Below are positions 4,031 to 4,388 of a stretch of 22,363 bases of DNA, piece by piece. The position numbers were made by a program, and so were the translations under genes. The notes under the pieces are model-generated. The model was given only the letters and a program-made list of their open reading frames with translations. It was not told the DNA's origin and searched no databases. The stretch covers positions 281,241 through 303,603 of the forward strand of contig NIVC01001370.1 in assembly GCA_002269645.1 (NCBI GenBank), written 5' to 3'. The stretch comes from Macrostomum lignano. Its lineage: Eukaryota. Position 1 is the first letter of the stretch. The number at the start of each line of letters is the position of its first letter.

Positions 4031-4388
4031 TTATTTATAGCAGAAGCAGGGACAACGTTCGGCCAAGACCGTGGTGGCATAGTTGCGGACGCAGCGCCGG
4101 GAGTATCGGCCGCCCAGTATCCTGCAGTAAAGGTTGCAGACGAATGTCCAGCTGTCTGAAAGCATAAGCAAGGAGAGAGAGTGTTGAATTCACTTGATTT
4201 TTCTGAACTGAATCTTCGGCTTTAGTACGGCTCGGCTTACAAGTGACTCTGTTGGCCAGTCGCTTGATAGCCAGGTGATCCGCCTTGGCAACCGGCTGCA
4301 CTAGAGGACGGTTCCTGCTAATAGCTGAGGCGCTAGTAGCAGCAAAGACCAACAGACAGATGGTGATAGCAACCAATAGAATCTTCAT
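4031..4388 (-). CDS. Secreted cysteine-rich cationic prepropeptide, defensin/macin-like; complement(join(4031..4155,4241..4388)), 90 aa
   Basis: Hydrophobic signal peptide MKILLVAITICLLVFAATSASA, then a propeptide ending in KR. An 85-nt phase-1 intron (t|gtaagc ... tctctccttgcttatgctttcag|ac) restores the mature peptide LANRVTYSWTFVCNLYCRILGGRYSRRCVRNYATTVLAERCPCFCYK followed by TAA. Confidence 0.85.

Follow-up and report, generated by a model that had tools for sequence, protein, structure and literature searches.

A Two-Exon Gene of Macrostomum lignano Encodes a Lineage-Restricted, Six-Cysteine Secretory Precursor with a Possible Role in Host Defence

Gene Structure and Splicing

The DNA analysed here, called the window hereafter, is a stretch of 22,363 nucleotides (nt) from the flatworm Macrostomum lignano (contig NIVC01001370.1, assembly GCA_002269645.1, positions 281,241 to 303,603 of the forward strand), numbered from its first letter. 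Its minus strand carries a spliced gene, 4388..4241 + 4155..4031, whose joined coding sequence (CDS) of 273 nt is in frame and encodes a protein of 90 amino acids (aa), MKILLVAITICLLVFAATSASAISRNRPLVQPVAKADHLAIKRLANRVTYSWTFVCNLYCRILGGRYSRRCVRNYATTVLAERCPCFCYK. A spliced gene had been proposed at this place in the initial annotation, made from the letters alone, and its coordinates, its 85-nt GT..AG intron and its product turned out to be exact to the base. In fact, the spliced product is identical to deposited proteins, Mlig016290.g1 (GenBank PAA73604.1, BOX15_Mlig016290g1) and UniProt A0A1I8GG96 ("Secreted protein"), and it is 98% identical to PAA52855.1 (Mlig016290 g2).

The coding part of exon 1 (4241..4388, minus strand) measures 148 nt from the ATG, is identical to PAA73604.1 and A0A1I8GG96, and includes the signal peptide, the pro-region and the start of the putative mature peptide (6 1/3 codons). 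Upstream of it, the open 'partial' CDS of PAA73604.1 contains an annotated 5' leader of 24 nt (4389..4412, minus strand; LTVATTAN), and an in-frame TAA is present in the window sequence 30 nt upstream of the ATG. The intron (4156..4240, minus strand; 85 nt, phase 1, GTAAGC...TTTCAG), which has a pyrimidine-rich tract, splits the codon of Tyr50 as T|AC. The coding part of exon 2 (4031..4155, minus strand), 125 nt long, provides the remainder of residue 50 and the residues up to 90, the entire six-cysteine domain and the TAA stop (4033..4031). In the list of open reading frames (ORFs), a 117-aa ORF (4035..4388) runs through the intron and ends in a frameshifted, Cys-poor tail that does not contain the six-cysteine domain, while exon 2 is listed as an ORF of its own, of 46 aa (4031..4171). 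The gene is thus hidden in the ORF track, as had been remarked, but it was already annotated in GenBank, UniProt and WormBase ParaSite.

The GenBank annotation of assembly Mlig_3_7 was obtained from RNA-seq and transcriptome assemblies (StringTie, TACO, de novo assembly and TBONE) and not ab initio (PMC5730564), and therefore the gene model reflects spliced transcripts. Moreover, a phase-1 intron interrupts the same Tyr codon (T|AC) in the duplicate copy of the gene (87 nt) and in two paralogs described below, Mlig033545 (106 nt) and Mlig029134 (85 nt). Compared with Mlig033545, the identity was 68% in the CDS and 42-47% in the intron; compared with Mlig029134, it was 63-64% in the CDS and 64-65% in the intron, which is no more diverged than the CDS. 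The identity to the deposited proteins, the transcriptome-derived annotation and the conserved position and phase of the intron put the splice beyond chance, and Mlig016290.g1 is a genuine gene of two exons that is transcribed and encodes a secretory precursor of 90 aa.

In the duplicate copy (Mlig016290.g2) the intron, at 10167-10253 of the NIVC01003175.1 locus, is 87 nt long, its pyrimidine tract containing an additional CT, and is in frame with no stops. Its retention would give a protein of 119 aa in which the whole Cys domain is kept and one extra Cys is added; retention of the 85-nt intron in the window copy would produce a frameshift.

Parts of the Precursor and the Published Catalogue

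The exact protein is listed as group 60 of the flatworm antimicrobial peptide (AMP)-like peptides (fAMP-LPs) in the S5 file of a helminth-wide survey (Irvine et al. 2023, PLoS Pathog, PMC10414684), and the two 90-aa sequences are identical. The group comprises three gene models (the ML2 model, Mlig016290g1 and Mlig016290g2), all SignalP 4.1-positive, and it was scored as AMP-like by a 90.9-100% consensus of 11 predictors; these scores are in silico only, and the cysteine-rich candidates were not synthesised by those authors. Because the protein is already listed there as AMP-like, the idea of a candidate AMP is not new, and the candidate new antimicrobial family put forward in the initial annotation had been anticipated by the catalogue.

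What differs is the extent of the peptide and its context. In the catalogue group 60 has the status "Peptide >60AAs", with a chain of 68-74 aa, as ProP 1.0 predicted no propeptide cleavage. The whole post-signal chain was accordingly taken as the peptide and, at that length, discarded from the published priority list, an omission that may be due solely to the unpredicted KR site. We propose, instead, a mature part of 47 aa. Moreover, the catalogue entry does not relate the protein to its paralogs Mlig033545 and Mlig029134, and it neither mentions that the intron is conserved and the KR invariant nor assigns a fold.

The signal peptide corresponds to residues 1-22 (MKILLVAITICLLVFAATSASA; 4323..4388, minus strand). 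The cleavage site predicted by SignalP 4.1 varies with the gene model, falling after residue 20 or residue 22, and A-S-A is read in the sequence at positions -3 to -1 before I23. Its presence, which had been predicted from the letters, agrees with the published SignalP 4.1 result (PMC10414684 S5) and with the UniProt name "Secreted protein". It is followed by a spacer, or pro-region, of 21 aa (residues 23-43, ISRNRPLVQPVAKADHLAIKR; 4260..4322, minus strand), which ends in K42-R43 (4265..4260). In the family alignment the K-R is invariant in all members, and the site, K-R or K-R-R with no Arg at P4, is of a non-furin type.

The putative mature part is the 47-aa C-terminal domain with its six cysteines, encoded on the minus strand at 4138-4136 (C56), 4126-4124 (C60), 4093-4091 (C71), 4054-4052 (C84), 4048-4046 (C86) and 4042-4040 (C88). 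The six-cysteine domain that had been claimed is therefore present in the spliced product, and all six Cys columns are invariant across the family alignment. Our recount of the charged residues of the putative mature peptide (7 Arg, 1 Lys and 1 Glu, net +7) agrees with the earlier one.

A Family of Three Loci Restricted to M. lignano

When 1.84 billion representative proteins were searched exhaustively with phmmer, the only additional clusters were two from M. lignano, and a profile search of 5.8 billion proteins found the same clusters, the only addition being an older gene model of one of them. The family, found in M. lignano only, thus consists of three loci, Mlig016290, Mlig033545 and Mlig029134, each of which is duplicated by recent polyploidy. 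The label 'SCP domain-containing', met in these searches, belongs to the older Mlig029134 gene model, which has a spurious N-terminal extension, and was disregarded.

In the alignment, the signal-peptide core and the spacer motif ISRN.PL..P.A..H.A.KR are invariant in the upstream part, and Y50, W52, C56-x3-C60, G64, Y67, C71 and E82-R83-C84-P85-C86 in the C-terminal domain. The final Cys is also invariant, but its position shifts, since the window gene has CPCFC and the paralogs CPCxSC. By contrast, N57, L63 and the CFCY end are not conserved among paralogs. The ratio of nonsynonymous to synonymous substitution rates (dN/dS) between paralogs was 0.36-0.55 overall, and therefore the sequence is coding and constrained; the family is under purifying selection. 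In the Cys domain the ratio was 0.32-0.75, and it was lowest in the spacer, 0.17-0.24, a figure that rests on only 20 codons. The synonymous rate (dS) of the signal peptide was low, 0.23-0.44 between paralogs.

The window from 1 to 14030 and contig NIVC01003175.1 are duplicated blocks, with an identity of 94-96% over the approximately 10 kb that hold the gene and of 87-96% in the other blocks, in keeping with the whole-genome duplication that M. lignano underwent recently. The duplicate copy differs from the window CDS by two nonsynonymous changes (I8T and Y75H) and one synonymous change. No tandem paralogs were found by tblastn in the window or in the duplicate NIVC01003175.1 locus.

A further secreted M. 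lignano peptide, group 61 of the same S5 file (BOX15_Mlig016917g3; PMC10414684), shows HWRMICRHFC...C...CQCGC after a KR site, and with this W-x2-I-C-x3-C-x5-C-x14-C-x-C-x-C it shares the framework of the family. Its hhalign comparison with the family alignment was in register (E = 0.008, probability 4.8%), and from this likeness in sequence Mlig016917 may belong to a larger superfamily as its fourth, distant member.

Comparison with Macins

The initial annotation had compared the peptide with the C-terminal half of hydramacin. Macins (hydramacin-1, theromacin, neuromacin and the mytimacins; PF14865) are, like the window protein, cationic, secreted and Cys-rich. They have 8-10 Cys with C1-C7 and C2-C6 bonds (Tarr 2016, PMC5116183), and an N-terminal half of the type CWETWSRC, whereas the window family has six Cys only and none N-terminal to CxxxC. 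We built a macin alignment from four proteins carrying PF14865, with the sequence of hydramacin-1 confirmed from PDB 2K35. The comparison of the family alignment with the macin alignment by hhalign gave a probability of 0.6%, and the short aligned stretch was in a different register from that of the initial annotation. A pairwise BLASTP of the window peptide against hydramacin-1 reproduced the CN..C..LG...C...C.CY match, with 11/35 identities and E = 0.018 for this single comparison. Shuffle tests gave a marginal result only for the window copy and hydramacin-1 (p about 0.01-0.02), while the scores of the window copy against two other macins, and all those of the paralogs, were non-significant. 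The local match (CN..C..LG...C......C.CY) is found in the window copy only, and the residues that create it (the N of CN, LG and CFCY) are precisely those not conserved in the family.

Membership in the macins was rejected, given no match to PF14865, the profile probability, the non-significant paralogs and a likeness that the family does not conserve; the hydramacin resemblance noticed at the outset did not survive.

Cysteine Array and Disulfide Pattern

Numbered on the ten-Cys reference array (Tarr 2016, PMC5116183), the family has C3 and C4 (CxxxC), C6, C8 and C9 (CPC), and C10. With cysteine-stabilised alpha/beta (CS-alpha-beta) peptides it shares a CxxxC in a predicted helix and an invariant CxC, here CPC, near the C-terminus. 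The initial annotation had also pointed to a CxxxC and a CxC, but the invariant CxC is CPC and not the terminal CFC that had been claimed. Moreover, ten residues (x10) separate the CxxxC helix from the Cys that follows it, as in insect defensins; an additional Cys towards the C-terminus, at reference C10, is also present in plant defensins, drosomycin and ABFs; and the precursor plan of signal, pro-region and mature peptide is that of CS-alpha-beta defensive peptides. The differences are the absence of C2 and of a GXC gamma-core, the Pro inside the CxC, the long C6-C8 loop (x12-14), and, in sequence and profile comparisons alike, the lack of a match to the models of defensins, toxins or macins. 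That no Cys precedes the CxxxC helix had been pointed out for the window peptide, and it is true of every family member. Since reference C2 is absent, the canonical third bond C2-C6 cannot form, and C71 would pair with C88 because, by elimination, it is the only remaining pair. The nearest precedent is the nematode ASABF-6Cys-alpha, with six Cys and likewise no N-terminal Cys C2 (Tarr 2016, PMC5116183).

Structural Models

C56-x3-C60 is both invariant and helical in the AlphaFold2 predictions. The two models, from the single sequence and from the five-sequence family alignment, both showed a helix over residues 38/39-62, which includes CxxxC, followed by short strands, with a predicted local distance difference test (pLDDT) score of 72-77 for residues 51-70. 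Residues 76-82 were below 50, so the strand assignment around the invariant CPC is of low confidence. When the alignment-based model was compared with the PDB by Foldseek, 7/7 matches were scorpion-toxin CS-alpha-beta scaffolds (tamapin and scyllatoxin-derived CD4 mimics), with target-normalised template-modelling (TM) scores of 0.48-0.61 and root-mean-square deviations of 2.4-4.2 Å (2.4-2.7 Å for the three best), but with non-significant E values of 2-10 and probabilities of 0.18 or less. This is a hint, from modelling, of a helix plus hairpin in a scorpion-toxin-like fold. Sequence searches of the PDB with the protein and with the family profile returned chance matches only (tRNA deaminase, ribosomal protein L22 and a phage hyaluronidase).

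Other Features of the Window

At 2839-3471 there is a minisatellite with a 23-nt unit and a 51-nt higher-order period (about 25 copies, 87% matches), which gives rise to long spurious minus-strand ORFs and is also present, with another copy number, in the duplicate locus. At 4925-5658, about 540 nt upstream of the ATG of the peptide gene, a low-complexity, CT-rich array that spans about 730 nt (periods 5, 14, 17, 19 and 33; GC skew about -0.6) generates pseudo-ORFs of 220-280 aa on both strands. Farther along, from 7786 to about 15000 on the plus strand, a large multi-exon gene of the FRAS1/FREM extracellular matrix type shows Frem_N and several Cadherin_3/CSPG repeats; its homologue in the duplicate NIVC01003175.1 locus is annotated with Cadherin_3, Calx-beta and Lectin_C. 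A 252-aa ORF at 19115-19873 (minus strand) has an N-terminal hydrophobic leader, many Cys and a C-type-lectin-like C-terminal stretch (WxW...GEPNN), and no Pfam match at E up to 0.01; judging from these features, it may correspond to a separate gene for a secreted lectin-like protein, or to an exon. Finally, a tandem array of a 21/29-nt unit (CCACCTAAGAGACAGGGGC...) occupies 20664-21769, with about 36 copies and 85% matches.

Discussion

The explanation that we tentatively favour, without calling it probable, is that this genuine, M. lignano-restricted gene for a secreted six-Cys precursor produces an extracellular effector whose most likely role is that of a cationic host-defence (antimicrobial) peptide. 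The effector would possibly be CS-alpha-beta-like, to judge from the models. Among the roles considered, host defence leads, on the grounds of a signal peptide, a net charge of +7 and the agreement of the published predictors. In the mechanism that we envisage, the protein would enter the secretory pathway and lose its signal peptide, and the spacer may be removed at K42-R43 by a non-furin convertase of the PC1/PC2 or Kex2 type. The C-terminal domain would fold compactly with three disulfides, the CxxxC helix being pinned to the C-terminal CPC strand (C56-C84 and C60-C86), and the C71-C88 pair would replace the usual N-terminal-to-beta-2 bond of CS-alpha-beta peptides. The released peptide would then act extracellularly.

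Several results weigh against this explanation. The cationic character that had been emphasised holds for the window peptide, but it is specific to this locus and no family trait, as the net charge of the putative mature part is +4, +2 and +1 in the paralogs. The KR-terminated propeptide proposed at the outset is backed by the invariance of K-R, but the published ProP 1.0 run predicted no cleavage at K42-R43 (PMC10414684 S5), and therefore processing at this site is something that we infer. The spacer is itself cationic (+4), and a pro-region both constrained and cationic is unusual for the disposable propeptide of an AMP. Moreover, AMP predictors favour cysteine-rich peptides, as the authors of the catalogue state (PMC10414684). 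On the structural side, the mean pLDDT was low, 59.6 with the single sequence and 54.6 with the family alignment, and Foldseek with the single-sequence model returned only noise from the PDB (SRF and V-ATPase stalks), to which the non-significance of the scorpion-scaffold matches must be added. In all members of the family the stretch from the signal peptide to C56 is free of Cys, and there is no Gly two residues before C71 to form a GXC gamma-core. An hmmscan of the window protein against Pfam, at E up to 10, run also with its mature part and with four relatives, found no relevant family, whether defensin, macin, toxin or ShK. Finally, neither expression nor localisation was found under the gene identifiers (IDs) in the full-text literature and in the text-searchable supplements of PMC5730564, PMC10786194, PMC12896417 and PMC5816591.

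Three other functions are each compatible with the data. The first, which we consider unlikely, is that of a toxin-like ligand of ion channels, secreted by glands and acting on the channels of prey, predators or competitors, as short scorpion K+-channel toxins or ShK do, with no killing of microbes. In its favour, the only structural neighbours found are scaffolds of short scorpion K+-channel toxins (tamapin and scyllatoxin derivatives), although these matches are non-significant and were obtained with a model of low confidence. Arg and aromatic residues are abundant on the surface, and the pattern of evolution resembles that of toxin precursors, with a signal dS of 0.23-0.44, a pro-region dN/dS of 0.17-0.24 and a mature dN/dS of up to 0.75. 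As for ShK, the paralog Mlig033545 bears the UniRef label 'ShKT domain-containing protein', which the window protein does not, and ends in C-x-C-x2-C, and in both systems a six-Cys domain stands at the C-terminus of a secreted protein. The ShK spacing, however, is C-x8-C-x4-C-x10-C-x3-C-x2-C, and the family spacing, C-x3-C-x10-C-x12/14-C-x-C-x1/2-C, does not fit the ShKT domain (PS51670 / PF01549), with its C-x3-C-x2-C at the C-terminal end; the window peptide ends in C-P-C-F-C. In addition, no member matched PF01549 or a scorpion-toxin model in Pfam at E up to 10. Diatoms are the food of M. lignano, which is not known to be venomous; this also speaks against a toxin.

The second is an endogenous signalling precursor, similar to a prohormone or neuropeptide precursor, from which dibasic cleavage, in the regulated secretory pathway, would release the N-terminal peptide ISRNxPLxxPxAxxHxAx, the Cys-rich domain, or both. 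The invariant non-furin K-R or K-R-R, with no Arg at P4, is what such a precursor would show, and no other part of the protein is as constrained as the spacer (dN/dS 0.17-0.24 against 0.32-0.75 in the Cys domain), although this contrast rests on 20 codons only. By default ProP looks for furin-type sites, and if the published run used this default its negative result is compatible with a site of neuroendocrine type. The AMP pipeline that flagged the protein also draws in hormone-like peptides (PMC10414684). On the other hand, no Gly precedes the KR, so that there is no amidation signal, and no similarity to known peptide-hormone families emerged in the Pfam and PDB sequence searches. A family confined to one species, among 1.84 billion representatives searched, is moreover atypical for hormones. 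We regard this role as doubtful, and rank it after that of a toxin.

The third would be a reproductive protein, either a seminal-fluid peptide of the prostate glands or another reproduction-related secreted protein, passed at mating. According to two reports (PMC7336406, PMC5977470), the reproduction-related genes of M. lignano typically encode small secreted proteins that are lineage-restricted and fast-evolving, and a mature-domain dN/dS of up to 0.75 would agree with this. By contrast, none of the three gene IDs (0/3) is present in the supplementary files of PMC7336406 on reproduction-related genes, and no sequence feature points to reproduction. The supplements of the seminal-fluid screen (PMC5977470) do not contain any Mlig-type IDs, and therefore this look-up is uninformative either way. 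We judge a reproductive function improbable.

Last, a truncated hydramacin/neuromacin homologue that has lost its N-terminal half is very improbable, as the match to hydramacin-1 and its shuffle p value in the window copy are set against no PF14865 match, an hhalign alignment in another register, no shuffle signal and no CFC for the aligned CxC in the paralogs, the absence of both the C1-C7 bond and the CWETWSRC half, and the result of hidden Markov model (HMM) and BLAST searches of 33 flatworm species including M. lignano, which found no CS-alpha-beta, big-defensin, myticalin or macin homologues (PMC10414684).

Returning to the host-defence effector, a bolder version can be formulated, in which Mlig016290, Mlig033545 and Mlig029134, perhaps with Mlig016917, would make up the first true defensin-like family of CS-alpha-beta type in Platyhelminthes, with a rewired C6-C10 disulfide replacing the lost N-terminal strand and with antimicrobial or channel-blocking activity. 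We advance this as an unlikely proposal, though not a far-fetched one.

Conclusions

The initial interpretation is, as a whole, partly supported, and what lies at the locus is a spliced, secreted, six-Cys and cationic precursor. At present, the gene is an annotated and catalogued orphan secreted peptide. The analysis is useful, for now, as a correction: the proposed link to macins found no support, CPC is the motif that is conserved, and the peptide was perhaps dropped from the published list through an unpredicted KR site. M. lignano is transparent, and RNA interference and in situ hybridisation are in use in this animal. As its transgenesis is also established (PMC5730564, PMC7053086), the localisation and the function of the peptide are quickly testable in M. 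lignano. Flatworms are described as not having the canonical lophotrochozoan AMP families, CS-alpha-beta peptides included, an absence that was called surprising (PMC10414684). If a CS-alpha-beta-like fold with a rewired disulfide is true of this family, part of the reported AMP gap of flatworms would be filled, and the family would show how the CS-alpha-beta scaffold tolerates the loss of its N-terminal strand.

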